Below, in pieces: positions 22,763 through 34,764 of a stretch of 64,000 nucleotides of DNA. Both the position numbers and the translations under genes were made by a program. How positions within the stretch are numbered: position 1 is the first letter of the stretch; the number at the start of each line of letters is the position of its first letter. The DNA is taken from the IMG/VR virus record IMGVR_UViG_3300027963_000035, positions 186,001-250,000 of that record. One strand, given 5' to 3'. Under the pieces are notes generated by a model, which was not told the origin of the DNA, made no database searches, and worked only from the letters and a program-made list of their open reading frames with translations.

Positions 22763-22765
22763 ACG

Positions 22766-23029
22766 TCCGAAGGGTGGGATTCGAACCCACAGTCTACAAA
22801 TTCAAGTTTGTGTGATTTTCACCACTCCTTGGACTTTGTCTTCACCATATCTTACGATTTAGGTGGTCGCCGTTAAGTCTCTACACGTTCCCTTACGGGC
22901 TTCGCTCGGCATTGCCATATGCTCACGCATTTAGGTTTCACCGAATTTGACGACATCCCATACGAAGTTTCCAATCGTATGGCACGAAAATTCATGAGTT
23001 TGTTGCATTAACCGTTTTGCTACCTTCGG
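22766..23029 (-). tRNA. tRNA with CAU anticodon (probably Ile2, possibly elongator Met) containing a group I intron
   Basis: CCGAAGG/CCTTCGG-A acceptor, ACAAA-CTCAT^AA-TTTGT anticodon arm, GTGGG-TTCGAAT-CCCAC T-arm; 16 nt downstream of tilS. Confidence 0.88.
22803..22993 (-). ncRNA. Group I intron (IC3-like), 191 nt, between tRNA positions 36/37
   Basis: P AAATTCGGTGAAAC, Q GCAATGCCGAGC, R GTAGAGACT, S AAGACAAAGTCC; 5' exon ends in U, terminal G. Confidence 0.88.
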
Positions 23030-23045
23030 AAATTAACCAACTGTG

Positions 23046-23699
23046 CTAGTCTAGAATTACCGTCTTATTCTTCAAGTTTTTTTCAATTCTCCTTGAACAA
23101 TATTTTTCTAGACTTAACTTTTGTTTTTTCATTTCTGGAATGATTGTTTGACGAATCCAATTTCTTCTGCTTCCTTTGACAACCTTATTGGTTTCGTCCT
23201 CCACAGTATAGCAATTCCATTTATTCCTGTCAACGTACTCTTGAAAATCTTTTTTCTTACTTAATAGAAAAGGATGGATGATCTTGAATCCATCGAACTC
23301 GCTAATTAATTCAAAAGGATTGTGATTGGGTTGTCCACGAAAACAATTAATTAAATAGCTTTCCACATAATCATTGAGATGATGAGCAGTGATTACATAA
23401 CCTTCGTAATCCACAACCTCTTTATAAAAATTTAAGCGGGCCTCCCTGCAATCTTTTTCTGTTTTTAAATTTTGGCCCTTACCCACAATGCCCTTTAATC
23501 CTAATTTACCACAAAGTTCATGGAACTTATTTTCCATGGCATGGTTCTGTTCTCTTAGATTATGATTAAAGTGCAATGGAGTAATGTTGTATCCCTTGCT
23601 TCTCAACCAAAATAAAGAAGATACGCTATCGACACCCATGCTTACGGCAACATAGCAATGAGTTTCTTTTGAAACAATTTCTTTAATGATCTTGATCAA
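23046..23699 (-). CDS. tilS: tRNA(Ile)-lysidine synthetase (catalytic domain only)
   Basis: PP-loop AVSMGVDS, HFNHNLR, REARL, TAHHLNDYVE, EDETN, RNWIR. Confidence 0.88.
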   Translation of the reverse strand: MIKIIKEIVSKETHCYVAVSMGVDSVSSLFWLRSKGYNITPLHFNHNLREQNHAMENKFHELCGKLGLKGIVGKGQNLKTEKDCREARLNFYKEVVDYEGYVITAHHLNDYVESYLINCFRGQPNHNPFELISEFDGFKIIHPFLLSKKKDFQEYVDRNKWNCYTVEDETNKVVKGSRRNWIRQTIIPEMKKQKLSLEKYCSRRIEKNLKNKTVILD

Positions 23700-26601: not shown

Positions 26602-26683
26602 TGGTTGATGCAGGATTCGAACCTGCGAAGCTAATAGCATTTGATTTACAGTCAAACCCCTTTGACCACTCGGGAAATCAACC
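26602..26683 (-). tRNA. tRNA-Tyr(GUA)
   Basis: GGTTGAT/ATCAACC-A acceptor, TTTGA-CTGTAAA-TCAAA anticodon arm, long variable arm, GCAGG-TTCGAAT-CCTGC. Confidence 0.92.
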
Positions 26684-26969
26684 TATATTATTTAAAGTAG
26701 ACTTCAGTAGCAGCACCCAAAGCAATTGATGATCCTGCTACAACACCAAATGTAAGGAGACATTGCCAAACAATTTCTCCTGTCAATCCACCCCAAATAC
26801 CTGCAATTGCAATAACAGCAGAAGATAAAATCAAAAAGCAAAGGGTGGAACCAACGATCTTTTTTATTTTTAGATTGTTGTTGTTATTGACGATTTTTTT
26901 CATGTTTTCCTTTAGTTGAATAAAAATTTAAAACTCTACTATATATATAGTATAAAGAGTTTTAAATTT

Positions 26970-27428
26970 ATGAAATACACATACACACATGAAACTTTAA
27001 AAGAACTTGTTGAAAGTTCAACATCAGTGAGACAAGTTCTTTTTAAATTAAAATTAGTTGCTGCCGGTGGTAATTACGCCACAATAAAAGCATATATTAA
27101 GAAGTTTAATTTAGACACTTCTCACTTTAAGGGTCACGGATGGTCTAAAGGGTTTGTTCTACCACCAAAAAAACCAATTGAATCATATCTTGTTAAAGGA
27201 AGTAACACTCAAAGTTTCAAACTAAAAAAGAAGTTAATTAGAGAAAAAATCTTTGAACATAAATGCATGAATTGCAAGAATACTCATTGGCTTGGGAATT
27301 TAATTCCAATAGAACTTCACCATAAAGATGGAGATTCTTCAAACAATGAGCTTTCTAATTTAGAAATTCTTTGTTACAACTGCCACGGTTTGACACCAAA
27401 CTTTCGTGGTAAAAACAAGAAAAAATAA
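26970..27428 (+). CDS. Free-standing HNH homing endonuclease
   Basis: CMNC...IELHHKDGDSSNNELSNLEILCYNCH; lies between tRNA-Tyr and tRNA-Leu. Confidence 0.88.
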   Translation: MKYTYTHETLKELVESSTSVRQVLFKLKLVAAGGNYATIKAYIKKFNLDTSHFKGHGWSKGFVLPPKKPIESYLVKGSNTQSFKLKKKLIREKIFEHKCMNCKNTHWLGNLIPIELHHKDGDSSNNELSNLEILCYNCHGLTPNFRGKNKKK

Positions 27429-27429
27429 A

Positions 27430-27716
27430 TGCCAAAGGCGGGGGTCGAACCCGCACAGGATGTTATCCCGAGGGATTTTCTTACCACTATAGTTTTCACT
27501 ACCCTTGCGGTTTGTAGTCTGGACTTTACCTTCACCATAACTTCTCAGTTTTAGGTGCTGCCCGTCAAGTCTCTACACCTTCCTGATTTCTCAGGCTTGG
27601 CTCGGTATTAGCAGTTAAGCCTTCACCGAATTTGAGCAGTTCTGCTCTAAAAGTTTCCTTTTAGGCACTCAATTTAATATCAAGTCCCTTGCGTCTGCCT
27701 ATTTCGCCACTTTGGC
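27430..27716 (-). tRNA. tRNA-Leu(UAA) with group I intron
   Basis: GCCAAAG/CTTTGGC-A, AGGGA-CTT^AAAA-TCCCT, long variable arm, GCGGG-TTCGACC-CCCGC. Confidence 0.92.
27480..27681 (-). ncRNA. Group I intron (IC3-like), 202 nt, after U34
   Basis: P/Q/R/S core, P1 ACTT/GAGT with U-G pair, terminal G; same site as cyanobacterial/plastid trnL(UAA) introns. Confidence 0.9.
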
Positions 27717-27775
27717 TTTTTAAAACCAAACCCAAATAAATTTTCAAAGAACAACCAGCAATCGTCACTCCCTCC

Positions 27776-27868: not shown

Positions 27869-29188
27869 TCATTTTACACCTTTAAGGTAATTTTTATATT
27901 CTTCTAAGAAAATCTTTTCTTCATTCTTTGGATTAGAATTAGAGTGGCCTTTTGCTTGAACAACTTTGTTATTTTTAATTTCAATTGTTACTAGTGGTTT
28001 TTGAATTTCAGAGTTTAACCTTAAAAACAAAATAGTAGAATTCTTATTAGCGATATCTTCGTCATAGCTTGCAACGCAATGATTTAGCTTTATTCCTTCT
28101 TGAATTAAATCCTCGTGTTTAACTGGGGCTATTACGCTATACCTTTCATTTTTATATTCATATTTTTTAAAAGTTTTGCAAACTTTAGAGAACCTATTTT
28201 TAAAAGTTCTACTTTTTAAGACCTCATAATTTTTGCTAGTTATATCATGAAGTGTTTTAAGATATCTTGGATACTTATCAAAATCATTTTTCATTTGAAC
28301 GTTCATTTTTGCATAATCATGAAGAATTGATAATGCATCTTCAATATCTTCAATTCCCTGATTAGGCAACCCCCTGCAAATATAATCTGTTAATTTAAAT
28401 TTGTCATAACCCATCTTTATTAAGATATTAAAATATTCATCGTGCATATCTGGAAACCGATTATAGTTGTCAATTGCATACTTTATCACATCTACATTTT
28501 TAACCTCGCACCACCGTTCCAGAGTTGCATAATCGACTAATCTCATATAATCAGCCGGAACACTACTATATTCAGCAACCATTGTATCTAATTTTTCAAT
28601 ATAGTAATCCAAGCTATACTTTTTAAAATCACTTATAGTTTTAATATTATAATCAAAATAGATTTGTGCGAATTCTAGATGGTGGAATTTTTCTTTATTT
28701 TTTTGTAAAAAGTCCCACTTTGCAAATTTTTCAAAATCCCCCATAATCACAGGATTATTTAAAATACTAAAAAGATCGCTCCTATCAGGTACATAGTAAT
28801 CTTCACGGCTGGTGATAATGAAGAATAACTGAATCCATTCTTCTTTGCACAATTTATAAATATCTTTATCTCTCGCCAATCCAGAAAGATTGCCAGATGC
28901 AAATTTTATACATGACTTAGGATTTTTAATAAGAGTATTTGTCTCTGCGTCATAGAACTTATTATCAATCAGAGAATATTTAACATTTGTTTTGTTGCTA
29001 AAATTAAAAATTAAACTTTTCTTGTCCTCAGACTCACTAACACTTTTCAAGTATTGATAGTGCTTAATTTTTGATTCTTTTTTCTTCTTTTCAGCTAAAT
29101 GTATTTGGTTTATAAGTTCTTTGGTTGTGAAACCATTAACTTGTATAGTTGCTGTTTTCTTGCCATTATTAATTTTGATTGTTCTCAT
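27869..29188 (-). CDS. PcfJ-like domain protein
   Basis: C-terminal LKTLHD...DLIQEGIKLNHCVASY...ILFLR...LVTIEI; start moved to ATG 29188 to exclude the array. Confidence 0.78.
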   Translation of the reverse strand: MRTIKINNGKKTATIQVNGFTTKELINQIHLAEKKKKESKIKHYQYLKSVSESEDKKSLIFNFSNKTNVKYSLIDNKFYDAETNTLIKNPKSCIKFASGNLSGLARDKDIYKLCKEEWIQLFFIITSREDYYVPDRSDLFSILNNPVIMGDFEKFAKWDFLQKNKEKFHHLEFAQIYFDYNIKTISDFKKYSLDYYIEKLDTMVAEYSSVPADYMRLVDYATLERWCEVKNVDVIKYAIDNYNRFPDMHDEYFNILIKMGYDKFKLTDYICRGLPNQGIEDIEDALSILHDYAKMNVQMKNDFDKYPRYLKTLHDITSKNYEVLKSRTFKNRFSKVCKTFKKYEYKNERYSVIAPVKHEDLIQEGIKLNHCVASYDEDIANKNSTILFLRLNSEIQKPLVTIEIKNNKVVQAKGHSNSNPKNEEKIFLEEYKNYLKGVK

Positions 29189-29215
29189 TTTACTTGTTAT
29201 GGACACCCTGTTCGT

Positions 29216-29890
29216 TATTAAAATCAGAGGGTTTTGGTTCACTCTCGCACATTGTTAAAATCGCACAGCTAGGTTCACTAAACCATCATGTTAAATCTTC
29301 TTATTTGGTTCACTCTCGCACATTGTTAAAATACCGGCACTAGGTTCACTCTTCACGCATGTAAAATCAGATTTTATGGTTCACTCGACAACTATGTTAA
29401 AATCGAAGGGCTAGGTTCACTCTTCATCTATGTTAAAATCAAGCAGGTTGGTTCACTCAACTACCTTGTTAAAATATCGAATGATGGTTCACTCACCAAA
29501 TTTGTTAAAATTCCCGACTGTGGTTCACTCCAGAGGTCTGTTTAAATCCGGACATATGGTTCACTCGAATGCGGTGTTAAAATCGCCGTTTGTGATTCAC
29601 TCACTATACATGTAAAATCTCTCACATTGGTTCACTTAACTACCTTGTTGAAATCGTCGGGCTTGGTTCGCTCCGGCAGTATGTAAAAATCCAGTCTGAT
29701 GACTCACTCAACGTTCATGTTAAAATCGTTAATAATGGTTCACTTCTCGTCCTTGTTAAAATCAAGCAGGTTGGTTCACTCCGGCAAAATGAAAAAATCT
29801 GGGCTTCTGGTTCACTCATGGACGCATGTTAAAATCAAGGAAACTGGTTCACTCTTGACTTTTGTTAAAATCTCAGCCACTGGTTCACTC
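29216..29890 (-). repeat. TIGR-like dual-repeat guide-RNA array (36-nt period, 19 units)
   Basis: + strand [TGGTTCACTC]-N8-[TGTTAAAATC]-N8; first box at 29235, 29271, 29306, 29342 ... 29845, 29881; spacers variable. Confidence 0.88.
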
Positions 29891-31831
29891 CAGTTAATTT
29901 TCAACTTGTTCAAAACTCTATACCCAGACTTTAACTTATTGATTATCATTTAGTAAAAGTGTGCATTATTATGCACTTTTTCAATTCTTTTTCAATTTCT
30001 TTAACACTCATTTTGAAATAATGGGATGGTATCTGTAAGTAATCTCCTACAATAAATTCAAAAAGCATTAATTTACCTTTTGAATTTTTTAGATAAATTT
30101 CTAGTGGTGAATCGTAACAACCACTATTGATTAATTCAACTGTCACTAGGGGCGTACCATCGGTTTCTAAATTACCCACGTTATCAACAATCATGTGATT
30201 AGGGGTAAAAGGTTTGTGCTTCCATTTTTCACGATTTCCATTTTCATCAACAACGTCAAAACATTCACATATAACTTTTTTTATTTGATCGATTTGCTTT
30301 TTGGAAGATTTAACTATAGGCTGTGGGTCGTACGCATCCTCTCCGAGTAAACTGAAGGCGGTGCATGAATCACACTCGCACATTTCGGTATAATAAATTT
30401 TATTTAATTTCATTTCTTTGTAACTTTTTCGTCCCTATAAATTTTTGTGACTAATAATAAGATTTAAAAATCACACGCCCCGTCCTCTACAGGATCCATG
30501 TATTCCAGCAAGGGAGTTATTCTATCCTCTGCCATTTCCAGTATTACATCTTCGTCAACGTCTTTTCCTATAACTTTCTTACTTACTATATGAAGATTGT
30601 ATATTTCGTAGAAACAATAACCTTCGCCGTTGTATTCATCGGTTTGTACCGTCAAATCCATTTTTATATCAACCTCGACAAACGAATCTAGGCCGATGAG
30701 AAATTGTAAGTGTATAATTTTGCCGCCCGAAACAAAACCATCTAACTTTCTTTGAATTTTTTGTGTTACGCAAGTGTTGAGAACATCCTTAAAATTTGAT
30801 TTCATAATTATCTTTTAGTCTCCTTGTTGGTCTTGTCGCTATTTCGTGGCTAGAAATCTTTTCCTGTAAATTTTTGCTCGTTCGGCGTCTTTGTTTTTGA
30901 GTCCAGTAGGTACAATTAGTCTACCGTGCCATCCTTCTGGAGCCTTTATATTGGCTTCTACGCACAATCTAAGGACTTTCGGTAGGAGATTACACTCCAA
31001 GCCCCGCAGTTCACCATAGGTGAAGGTAAGGAAAAGGGCTTGTTGCATGATTTTGTGGGCTTCGTGGATTGTTACATCTTTATTTGACAATCTACTTGAT
31101 AAGAGATGTTCTATGTTTCTATCGTATTCTTTTACAAACTCGTCGCACGAAAAGATTATTTTTGCTGCTTTTTTCCTAAAAGATGCGGGTCCGTTTTCAA
31201 AGACGTTAGTTGCCCATGCACGGAGTTTGTTTGCGAGTCTAATTGCTGTGTCCATGTTTCTTCTCAATAAACTGCACGTACCTAGACTTTAACTTATCAA
31301 ATAAAACTATAAGGTTTTAATGAATAAAAAGTTAAAACAACTCCAACATTATAAGCAGAACTTGGATCTGTTTTTATAACCTTAAAAACATTATGATCAA
31401 TTAATTTAAGAACATCTTTTGAGGAAAGACAACGCATACAATTTTTTCCATCAAAAATTCCAACATCATTCTGTTCGACTTTATCTATTTCTATTTGGCA
31501 GAGAAAGTATTCTTCTTCATCTTTAGACATATCAACTAAAAATTTTTCATTTATACTGTTTAGGACATCGCCTAAAGTGAAATCTTTAAAAAAATTTAAC
31601 TTTTTATTCATTGTTTACTTACCCGGACATTGACTTAAACAGTTTTTCAATAATCTGTTACTCTGAGCCACTATTATCTAAACTCTGAAAAAGTGCATCA
31701 ACATCTTCAATACTATATGTGTAGTTAAAATGACCATTATCTTTAGCGTGTTTCATATCTTCTACAAGATTTTCCAAAGCATCCAAGATAATTTCCATAT
31801 CATGCTTTTCAATATAGTAATTCATGTTTTT

Positions 31832-32755
31832 CTACTTCTTCAAATACTCATCAATATCCAAAAGATTTGGCTGAATGATATGATGGGTGTGTCCCAAATG
31901 AGCCATGACATAAGGCTTGGGGCAATCAATTCCTTCAACCTTGCACCAAAGTTCATGGACATTACTCAGGAACAACTTAACCACCCAACGCCTTGCCATA
32001 GCATCCACATGACCATCTGGCAGAATTCCACTCTTATACTTAGCGATAACTTCCTTGTTCTTGAAGTTCTTTGAATTCAAGACAGAATCAGCAAGTTCCT
32101 TGAATCCGCCTTCAAGGTTCTTTTTTACAAGAAACTCCTTCTGGGTCTTGTAAAGCTTACCATAGAAGCACTCCTCCTTACCAGAGAACTTCATGAAACT
32201 CTGCCCGACCTTCCAGCACAGGGTTTTAAGGCTGGCGTTCCAGGGACGCTTTTGACCCTTTTCCCACTTACTTGTGGGATCGAGACCAGCATAACGCCAA
32301 ATAGCACCAGCGGTCTTTGCCTTATTGATGTCAATATGAGCAACAAGACCAGCAGTAATCACAGGACCGATTCCGTAAACCTTATCCTTCAAAATCTTTG
32401 CAATCAAAAAACTATCAGTCCAGTGATCCATAGCCCGTTTGATTTGAGTTTCAAGAACTTCTGTTTGATCGTTCAAGAAACTAAAGAGTTCATGAGGCTC
32501 TTTATCCTTGCCAAAAGCGGTGATCTGATTGGTGCTTCGCTTACGATTCTCTTGAATCATATAATAGTAATCAACAATATACCTCACTTCATCCTTGGTG
32601 AGGGTCTTAATCTTATTAGTGAGATCTTTATTGAGCCTAGCAACAGTCCCAAGACTTGTCAGGCTATCTGGCATTAGGCTATCTGCAATCTTCTTGCTTG
32701 AAATGCCCTTGCCGCAAGTGGGACACTTCTTCTTTGTTACACTTTCCTTTGACAT
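31832..32755 (-). CDS. Nop/IS110 C-terminal-domain protein without nuclease domain (TasA-like)
   Basis: Coiled-coil region then VYGIGPVITAGLVAHID...AIWRYAGLDP...WNASLK...HVDAMARRWVVKLFL; no DEDD/RuvC or HNH domain seen. Confidence 0.8.
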   Translation of the reverse strand: MSKESVTKKKCPTCGKGISSKKIADSLMPDSLTSLGTVARLNKDLTNKIKTLTKDEVRYIVDYYYMIQENRKRSTNQITAFGKDKEPHELFSFLNDQTEVLETQIKRAMDHWTDSFLIAKILKDKVYGIGPVITAGLVAHIDINKAKTAGAIWRYAGLDPTSKWEKGQKRPWNASLKTLCWKVGQSFMKFSGKEECFYGKLYKTQKEFLVKKNLEGGFKELADSVLNSKNFKNKEVIAKYKSGILPDGHVDAMARRWVVKLFLSNVHELWCKVEGIDCPKPYVMAHLGHTHHIIQPNLLDIDEYLKK

Positions 32756-33517: not shown

Positions 33518-34396
33518 TCAAACCGTACCGGAAGGAAACTCGAGTGTTTCAAAAACACTTTCAAGTTCTTCTGATAATCTTCCTTTGATTACTTCGACTG
33601 CATATTGATAAAGAAATTCTGGACTAGTCTTGATGACTTCTTCTGCTTCAATCCATCTTCCTTTAATTACATCTTTAGCGTAACCACAGGCATACTCTGG
33701 ACTAGTTTTTATGGTTTCTTCTGCGTCAACCCAGCGACCTTCGATTACGTCTCTAGCATAATAATAGGCATATCGTGGATCAGTTTTAATAATCCCTTCT
33801 GATTCGATCCATCTGCCTTTAATTATATCTTTGGCGTAAAGATACATATAGTGGATTAAAACCCTCTCAGCTTCAATCCATCTATCTTTTAGGACATCTT
33901 TGGTGTAATAGTAAACATATGCAGGACTAGTTTTAATAATTTTTTCTGCTTCAATCCAGCGATCTTTAATTATATCTCTAGCATAGAGATAGGCATAATA
34001 TGGGTCAGTCTTAATAATCTCTTCTGCTTCATTCCAACGATTTTTAATTACATCTCTGGAATAAAGATAAGCATACTGGGGATCACTCTTGATAATCTCT
34101 TCGCACTCAATCCACCGTCCCTTGATAACATCTTTGGCATAATGATGGATATATTCTGGACGGCTATTCTTTATGATTTCTTCAACTTCAATCCACCGGT
34201 CTTTAATTACATCCCTAGCATAGCAGTAAGCATAATATGGTTCTGTCTTAATAATTGAAAACAAAGCTGTCTTTTGAATATTGTTGGGCTTTTCCCCATT
34301 AATCATAGTTCCATTTTTAATGAAACAATCAACATCCTCATAAGTAACGTTTGAGATGAACTGGTGATATTTTTCTGAGTAACTAGTCATTTTCAC
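33518..34396 (-). CDS. Tandem 24-aa helical repeat protein
   Basis: About 9 copies of IIKTxPxYAYxYARDVIKxRWIEAE. Confidence 0.8.
   Translation of the reverse strand: MKMTSYSEKYHQFISNVTYEDVDCFIKNGTMINGEKPNNIQKTALFSIIKTEPYYAYCYARDVIKDRWIEVEEIIKNSRPEYIHHYAKDVIKGRWIECEEIIKSDPQYAYLYSRDVIKNRWNEAEEIIKTDPYYAYLYARDIIKDRWIEAEKIIKTSPAYVYYYTKDVLKDRWIEAERVLIHYMYLYAKDIIKGRWIESEGIIKTDPRYAYYYARDVIEGRWVDAEETIKTSPEYACGYAKDVIKGRWIEAEEVIKTSPEFLYQYAVEVIKGRLSEELESVFETLEFPSGTV
33521..33540 (-). promoter_or_regulatory. Conserved promoter-like motif (11)
   Basis: aaccgtaccggaaggaaact, forming the last codons of the repeat gene. Confidence 0.7.
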
Positions 34397-34664: not shown

Positions 34665-34764
34665 GGCGAATGGGTGGAATCGAACCACCACAAGGGCATT
34701 TGTTTGCCTACTCTGCTGTCGCAGTTCGGAACTTCCCTCACGCTACCACTACGCTACATTCACC
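34665..34764 (-). ncRNA. tRNA-like RNA with expanded or replaced anticodon domain
   Basis: 8-bp GGTGAATG/CATTCGCC stem, D-loop AGTGGTA, T-arm GGTGG-TTCGATT-CCACC; sigma70-like promoter TTTACA-16-TATACT 7 nt upstream. Confidence 0.65.

Follow-up and report, generated by a model that had tools for sequence, protein, structure and literature searches.

Half-spacer reuse and array turnover in a probable dual-repeat TIGR guide array of a freshwater jumbo phage

A dual-repeat array at positions 29244–29889 (minus strand) of the window, a stretch of 64,000 nucleotides from an IMG/VR virus record (IMGVR_UViG_3300027963_000035, positions 186,001 to 250,000), was found to reuse several of its half-spacers with different partners. 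It probably encodes the guides of a TIGR-Tas system carried by a freshwater jumbo phage, with reuse arising through recombination at the repeats and a spacer GC content of ~48% set by the system. The source record is a 251-kb virus of 35.7% GC from freshwater metagenomes.

The type of system is already known, namely dual-repeat TIGR-Tas (Faure et al. 2025, PMC12045711), in which TasH from Salicola phage CGphi29 is the closest relative with a solved structure; what is new is the comparative evidence on array evolution. The origin, expansion and spacer gain of TIGR arrays are given as unknown in PMC12045711 and a September 2026 preprint, and natural targets as not yet findable. The closely related arrays of this phage lineage allow array evolution to be read directly. 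The rules that emerge are that whole guides shuffle and re-paired guides are rare, that point change is slow relative to rearrangement, that a small core of guides is retained from one lineage to another, in some cases in swapped form, and that spacer composition would be set by the system rather than by the donor. None of the TIGR literature examined describes the asymmetry between loop and edge repeats, the fidelity of half-spacers to their slots, the A/B swaps or the invariance of spacer composition.

Array architecture and predicted transcribed strand

Strictly periodic repeats occupied positions 29208–29890 of the window, with a period of 35–37 nt. Two repeats, AGTGAACCA and ATTTTAACA, alternated with 9-nt spacers, as in the published definition of dual-repeat TIGR arrays: two distinct alternating repeats of 8–12 nt, spacers of ~9 nt and a unit or tigRNA of ~36 nt (PMC12045711). 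Read on the minus strand, each of the 18 regular units (35–37 nt each) consisted of the edge repeat AGUGAACCA, a 9-nt spacer A, the loop repeat AUUUUAACA and a 9-nt spacer B, with every spacer made up of 8 variable nucleotides and a ninth that was mostly G. A degenerate nineteenth, terminal unit at 29208–29243 (minus strand) comprised an edge repeat, a 10-nt spacer, the loop variant AUUUUAAUA and a decayed edge.

Both repeats of dual-repeat TIGR arrays carry a 5' box D and a 3' box C (CCA-like, with a final A), and their edge and loop motifs covary (PMC12045711). The same features were present in both repeats here. The edge repeat had the form AG-UGAA-CCA and the loop repeat AU-UUUA-ACA, each with a terminal CA that includes the conserved box C adenine, and the closing pair covaried from G-C in the edge to U-A in the loop, as expected from the published structure. 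The central UGAA of the first repeat, together with a possible extra U-A pair, resembled the Salicola phage edge repeat AGCGAGCCA, and the A/U-rich second repeat resembled the loop of the Salicola phage array. As a separate observation, the edge repeats of units 14, 16 and 18 (29421, 29350 and 29279) ended in CCT rather than CCA and had lost the box C adenine; each was followed by a spacer beginning with AG, and these variants were retained in the related arrays L004 and L029.

Several features together point to the minus strand as the strand of the array RNA. In the relative L003 (Tas 93% identical), an array of ~46 units begins 5 nt past the tas stop and on the tas strand, and a short array also follows tas in L006 (Tas 47% identical) and L120 (80% identical). 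In form, the repeats agree with the AG....CCA of the array in Salicola phage CGphi29, which itself lies downstream of tasH, and all genes neighbouring the window array are on the minus strand. The best promoter-like site (TTGAAA, 16 nt, CATAAT; 29968–29995, minus strand), a consensus match only, is located ~80 nt upstream of the first edge repeat. The plus strand was also considered as the RNA, since it begins with UG as TasR repeats do, and was rejected in view of where the L003 array lies, of the repeat pattern in the Salicola phage and of the box C adenine.

The Tas protein and related systems

The tas gene (31832–32755, minus strand) encodes a protein of 307 aa with a coiled coil and a Nop domain and without a nuclease domain. 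It matched NCBIfam NF052498 TIGR_Tas at 184.7 bits (cut-off 100), as a Nop-domain Tas does, and the best matches in the PDB were SpTasH chains (E 1.4e-16) and 9mty (E 8.6e-12), the latter deposited under the name of an IS116/IS110/IS902 transposase C-terminal domain. The Tyr/His pair of tigRNA processing was retained as Y282 and H289, H289 corresponding to H296 of SpTasH, which processes pre-tigRNA (PMC13421893). The HNH catalytic residues H54 and H58 of SpTasH aligned to R40 and D44, and Pfam and NCBIfam profile searches gave no HNH or RuvC family match in Tas, the nuclease domains of TasH and TasR. The N-terminal 40 aa, with a single CxxC, were shared only with the closest relatives; the homologues, 2,286 in number, were mostly of 260–290 aa. 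The missing HNH histidines, the lack of an HNH or RuvC match and the absence of this N-terminal segment from most relatives place the protein in the TasA type.

By analogy with the published systems, the minus strand would be transcribed and cut inside the edge repeats into 36-nt tigRNAs, for which the retained Tyr/His pair and the promoter-like site are indirect evidence. Each tigRNA would guide a Tas dimer to an 18-bp DNA site with 5'-[spacer A][reverse complement of spacer B]-3' on one strand. TasA and dead-TasR proteins bind and repress according to a 2026 preprint. As the Tas described here has no nuclease domain, repression is predicted over cleavage, and binding and repression of the site would be the most likely outcome.

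The system shares with that of CGphi29 the 36-nt units with two 9-nt repeats and two 9-nt spacers, the AG....CCA form, an array on the tas strand, a Nop-domain Tas with the Tyr/His pair and carriage by a phage. It differs in that the identity of Tas to SpTasH is only 24% and the catalytic histidines of HNH are missing, that the loop repeat is AU....ACA instead of AG....CCA (a covarying change), and that a 1.5-kb insertion separates the array from tas. Like box C/D guide RNAs with Nop5/Nop56/58, it would place two guides between box C/D elements on a Nop-domain dimer, with a counting rule from the box to the fifth paired base; unlike them, it has no k-turn consensus (RUGAUGA/CUGA), no L7Ae and no fibrillarin, the targets of TIGR systems are DNA, and the units are arrayed in tandem.

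CRISPR arrays are likewise tandem repeat-spacer arrays of guide RNAs whose units are lost and reordered by repeat recombination. However, they have one repeat type of 23–55 nt and spacers of at least ~30 nt (criterion 26–72), and no cas genes, Cas1-Cas2 or leader-end polarity were seen here; the two 9-nt repeat types, the 9-nt spacers and the absence of Cas1 from the three phage records exclude a CRISPR-Cas identity. The RNA-binding domain is distantly related to that of the IS110 bridge RNA recombinases, but Tas has no RuvC and serves an array of many guides rather than a single bridge RNA. An IS110 bridge-RNA transposase, a family defined by a RuvC-like DEDD domain together with a Tnp domain, was rejected on scores below the cut-offs, with 20.9 bits against 21.3 for the weak match to PF02371 and 26.7 against 140 bits for NCBIfam IS110 NF033542.

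Reuse of half-spacers within the array

Three exact 8-mers occurred twice each among the 36 spacers. On the plus strand these were TCGCACAT at 29245 and 29316, AACTACCT at 29459 and 29638, and AAGCAGGT at 29441 and 29764. In the minus-strand reading they correspond, respectively, to ATGTGCGA, spacer B of unit 18 (29245–29252) and unit 16 (29316–29323, RNA AUGUGCGA); AGGTAGTT, spacer B of unit 12 (29459–29466) and unit 7 (29638–29645, RNA AGGUAGUU); and ACCTGCTT, spacer A of unit 13 (29441–29448) and unit 4 (29764–29771, RNA ACCUGCUU). All three pairs kept the same slot and the same orientation, and the partners across either flanking repeat differed.

The three exact pairs compared with 0.017 expected, and at least three were obtained in 0 of 5000 column shuffles. 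The reuse of half-spacers with different partners, as put forward in the preliminary description, was therefore well above chance. The near-copies that the same description had listed beside them did not stand out: CGGCAGTA/CGGCAAAA differ by 2 mismatches and TTCACGCA/TTCATCTA by 3, and four pairs with 2 mismatches were observed against 3.7 expected (P = 0.5).

Turnover among related arrays

Arrays with the same repeats were recovered by a pattern search of IMG/VR and JGI metagenomes, and one more through a Tas homologue, giving a comparison set of eleven related arrays with 145 distinct units. All arrays derive from short-read metagenome assemblies, in which mis-joins at repeats are possible in principle.

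Of the 18 units, 10 were intact between the window array and its near-identical relative L004, and these differed by 1 substitution in 180 nt. Another two were chimeric, with a different partner, and the remainder were missing, moved or replaced. Arrays of close relatives differed mainly by rearrangement at the repeats, new A/B pairings included. The two kinds of repeat behaved differently: half-spacers had retained their loop-repeat partner in 58 of 68 comparisons but their edge-repeat neighbour in only 26 of 88 (odds ratio 13.8, p = 2e-12), so that 10/68 loop junctions against 62/88 edge junctions were broken, these counts being distinct sequence comparisons and not independent events. Given that the two repeats are equally short, this asymmetry implies either that whole A-loop-B guides are gained and moved or that re-paired guides are mostly lost. 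It also provides an independent confirmation of which repeat is the loop. The direction of rearrangement is not rootable in the comparisons of the window array with its relatives.

The few re-paired guides involved ACCTGCTT, AGGTAGTT, ATGTGCGA, AGCCCGAC, AGCCCTTC and AGGACGAG. In the window array, unit 7 is AGCCCGAC–AGGTAGTT (guides are written as spacer A–spacer B) and is followed by ATGTGAGA–TGTATAGT. In L004 and L029, ATGTGAGA–TGTATAGT comes after TCATTCGA–AGGTAGTT, and AGCCCGAC is paired with AGGTGATC. A single loop-to-loop deletion would explain unit 7 from these arrangements, apart from two single-base differences, a loop T/C and a ninth base G/A. Reuse was also seen in L120, an independent array at 80% Tas identity, in which two B half-spacers were each used twice.

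The L004-type order was found independently in L029, and the order of L011 in L017, L018 and L021. Identical stretches common to the re-paired units were at most 28 nt. The independent recovery of unit orders and these short shared stretches argue against assembly artefacts. Reads from other samples gave fragmentary support, consisting of one rearranged contig, in which the array units stand in a different order, and of variant joins at low depth. The latter come from run X1, probably the source sample, where 140-nt contigs covering 29718–29781 showed alternative unit joins at a depth of 2–3 against 32, and such low-depth joins suggest coexisting array variants.

These comparisons support a model in which the array is reshaped as its own 9–10-nt repeats recombine or slip during replication. 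Most breaks fall at edge repeats, duplicating, deleting or reordering whole guides. Rare breaks at or beside the loop repeat combine the A half of one guide with the B half of a different one and leave one half-spacer with two partners, and duplicated units in addition diverge by point changes. Recombination, on this evidence, mostly shifts whole guides, and half-spacer re-pairing is rare. The earlier proposal that guides diversify by recombination at the short repeats was accordingly upheld as to rearrangement and new A/B pairings, but needs amending in that it is mainly whole guides that move.

Conservation was concentrated in few guides. Three of them, ACCTGCTTG–AGGACGAGA, TCAGACTGG–TACTGCCGG and TCATTCGAT–AGGTAGTTG, were nearly alone in spanning deeper lineages. 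The reused half-spacers ACCTGCTT and AGGTAGTT are part of these three guides; ATGTGCGA was found only in the window array, L004 and L029.

Swapped guides and a possible origin from targets

Single half-spacers never changed slot alone, as recombination between like repeats predicts. Just four 8-mers occurred in both slots, and they are the halves of two guides in which A and B are swapped as a pair. The guide ACCTGCTTG–AGGACGAGA stands as written in the window array, L004, L020 and L022 and in swapped form in L003; for TCAGACTGG–TACTGCCGG, the window array, L004 and L029 have the form as written and L011, L017 and L018 the swapped one. L003 and L022 are close relatives with many units in common, yet ACCTGCTTG–AGGACGAGA sits at a different array position in each and with its spacers in the opposite order. 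Under the published geometry, which agreed with TaTasR tigRNA1 and the oligo it targets, a swapped guide specifies the same double-stranded site, and swapped guides are functional in vitro (PMC12045711). Recombination between like repeats is unable to yield A/B swaps, so the recombination model is incomplete. At minimum, the swapped conserved guides would be natural evidence of selection on the 18-bp duplex site. The preferential retention of loop-repeat partners and the persistence of two pairs in swapped form lend indirect support to the prediction that both spacers of a unit act on one DNA site together.

An alternative that bears on these swaps is a target-driven origin, in which guides are made or remade from real 18-bp targets without regard to orientation, or in which targets share a half-site. 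It would account for two guides being swapped across lineages while specifying the same double-stranded site, for their four 8-mers being the only ones in both slots, and for the differing positions and orders in L003 and L022. Two further details fit with it. The unusual ninth base A accompanies AGGACGA[AG] into the other slot, and unit 14 of the window array and unit 10 of L004 have the same spacer A and B spacers that are overlapping 9-nt windows of the 12-mer AGGTAGTTGTCG. Against this origin, the target searches described below found no anchor for it, most of the turnover is explained otherwise, and duplex-templated formation of an A-loop-B unit takes one half from each strand, which no known mechanism does. 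Candidate machinery was not found either: Cas1 (PF01867) and reverse transcriptase were both absent from the records of this phage and two relatives (762 kb in total), with control genomes positive for Cas1, and none of the neighbouring ORFs tested resembled an acquisition gene. This agrees with the absence of a Cas1-like acquisition gene remarked on in the preliminary description. We regard a target-driven origin of the reuse as unlikely. A combined reading, in which TIGR guides are shuffled and are also remade from the same double-stranded target in either orientation, is somewhat less improbable and is offered tentatively; if true, the swaps would be the footprint of an orientation-blind, target-templated writing of paired guides.

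Searches for composite targets

A scan for sites of all 145 distinct guides covered 762 kb of this phage and two relatives with the arrays masked and allowed 0–2 bp between half-sites. No site with 0–1 mismatch was found. Sites with 2 mismatches numbered 25 in the true geometry, 17 in a wrong geometry and 10 with shuffled partners, which is no difference from the controls, and a site for guide 4 at 23182–23200 (2 mismatches, 1-bp gap) was likewise at control level. The records scanned are an estimated 50–75% complete, so that sites for self-targeting may lie in the remainder. For the three most conserved guides, IMG/VR contained no exact composite site. The enrichment of composite targets that had been anticipated was thus seen neither in the three phage genomes nor, for exact sites of the three conserved guides, in IMG/VR. 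That the targets are foreign, as the preliminary description supposed, would therefore be a default assumption.

In 185,579 species genomes guide 4 had 32 exact matches, against ~35 by chance. Fifteen of the 32 were one homologous site at codons 9–15 of rpsL in Marinilabiliaceae, in Carboxylicivirga, Saccharicrinis and two Bacteroidales MAGs, with both natural variants of the guide represented. No other guide matched within the 8-kb rpsL loci, and the site showed no conservation in other Bacteroidota. Guide 12 was at chance level in 41 genomes of Marinilabiliaceae, and guide 6 had no site with at most 1 mismatch in 400 Bacteroidota. The rpsL match is probably due to chance; if a related lake host exists, the phage could silence the host operon that starts with rpsL by means of its most conserved guide. 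The three conserved guides are the best handles for natural targets.

Duplication and drift

A different explanation is that unit duplication and point-mutation drift alone produce repeated half-spacers, one half staying as it was and the other mutating away. Duplication with divergence does occur in these arrays. In L003, units 19–23 and 28–32 form a duplicated block with 0–4 changes per unit, and a graded family of guides combines ACCTGCTT/ATCTGCTT/ATTTGCTT with AGGACGAG/AAGTCGAA/TAGATGAA. Within the window array, units 4 and 13 have spacer A in common and still agree at 4/8 positions of spacer B, for which the test of differences confined to one half was not decisive (P = 0.077); these two units may be a duplicated and diverged pair.

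The other two reused pairs do not fit drift alone. Units 7 and 12 have an exact spacer B and differ at 8/8 positions of spacer A, with all 8 differences in that one half (P = 1.6e-4), and units 16 and 18 differ by 0 in one half and 5 in the other (P = 0.026). The orthologous spacers of the window array and L004 have accumulated only 1 change per 180 nt, yet two units have a wholly different partner, and the re-paired partners in these two arrays are exact copies of spacers found elsewhere in the array. On these grounds, duplication and drift as the sole source of the reuse is very unlikely, and recombination at the repeats is preferred.

Spacer composition

The 36 variable 8-mers had a GC content of 46.9%, compared with 35.7% for the genome (251 kb) and 31–33% in the 2-kb flanks, which confirms both the number of 36 spacers and the figure of about 47% against AT-rich flanks first obtained by a hand count. 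The excess was significant against random genomic 8-mers (z = 3.7, P ~2e-4). Spacer GC was 46–53% in 12 related arrays whose loci have 35–40% GC, and in Salicola phage CGphi29 it was 48% in a locus of 58% GC, so that the comparison covers two array families. The profile of GC by position was equal in slots A and B, being low at positions 1 and 4 and high at 3 and 6, and position 9 was G in 83–86% of spacers and never C.

The suggestion that the GC richness of the spacers was inherited from foreign DNA of higher GC, copied from the host or from competing elements, draws on the difference between 46.9% and 35.7% and on the lack of 0–1-mismatch matches in the 762 kb of this phage and two relatives, but it is the least likely of the explanations considered, since CGphi29 spacers at ~48% are poorer in GC than their own locus, the equal slot profiles and the missing C at position 9 point to constraints of the complex, and no exact site of the three most conserved guides was found in IMG/VR. 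A foreign source, to which the GC richness had at first seemed to point, is therefore not indicated by it. The value of ~48% is probably a property of TIGR systems, which may stem from short RNA-DNA duplexes and a symmetric protein dimer.

Insertions and other features around the array

The tas gene is adjacent to the array, as in TIGR-Tas systems, at a distance of 1.9 kb here against 5 nt in L003. A segment of ~1.5 kb between the two (29890–31392, minus strand) contains three small ORFs (29946–30413, 30464–30805 and 30839–31267, all minus strand) without a match in family searches. By blastn synteny, the flanks of the window array are 98–99% identical to those of L004, and the segment is absent from L004. 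Because it is missing from this 99%-identical relative, the segment is taken as an insertion outside the system, and its three ORFs were rejected as system parts on the same ground. A fourth small ORF (31297–31611), also without a family match, is mostly common to L004. On the downstream flank of the array lie a PcfJ-like gene (27869–29188, minus strand), which was likewise rejected as part of the system as it is missing from the near-identical L004, and an ORF resembling an HNH homing endonuclease (26916–27428, plus strand).

The L004 array is itself split by a separate insertion of 2.4 kb (L004 7428–9799). The differing insertions at the array borders of the window and L004 indicate that these borders are insertion hot spots. 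Partial copies of units 1–3 stand on either side of the 2.4-kb insertion, as if it had been inserted by recombination within the array. In L119 (Tas 86% identical), no array was found within 6 kb downstream of tas; it may be elsewhere or have been lost.

Several further elements were observed in the window. A group I intron was identified by Rfam at 22810–23003 (minus strand; 59.2 bits, gathering score 50). An odd ARAGORN tRNA call (22765–22832) with an undetermined anticodon overlaps the intron, and the two may represent an intron-bearing tRNA gene. An element of ~200 nt at 27473–27722, present in two copies in L003, is 75–88% identical to sequences of 735-kb uncultured megaphages, Agrobacterium phage Atu_ph07 and a Pelagibacter phage and has neither an Rfam family nor a tRNA call. 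Off-diagonal blastn matches to L004 and L003 revealed internal repeats at 33618–34255, 71–74% alike, in the ORF at 33518–34396 (minus strand). Two more tRNA genes are located on the minus strand, one of 99 nt by Rfam at 34665–34763 and a tRNA-Tyr at 26602–26683.
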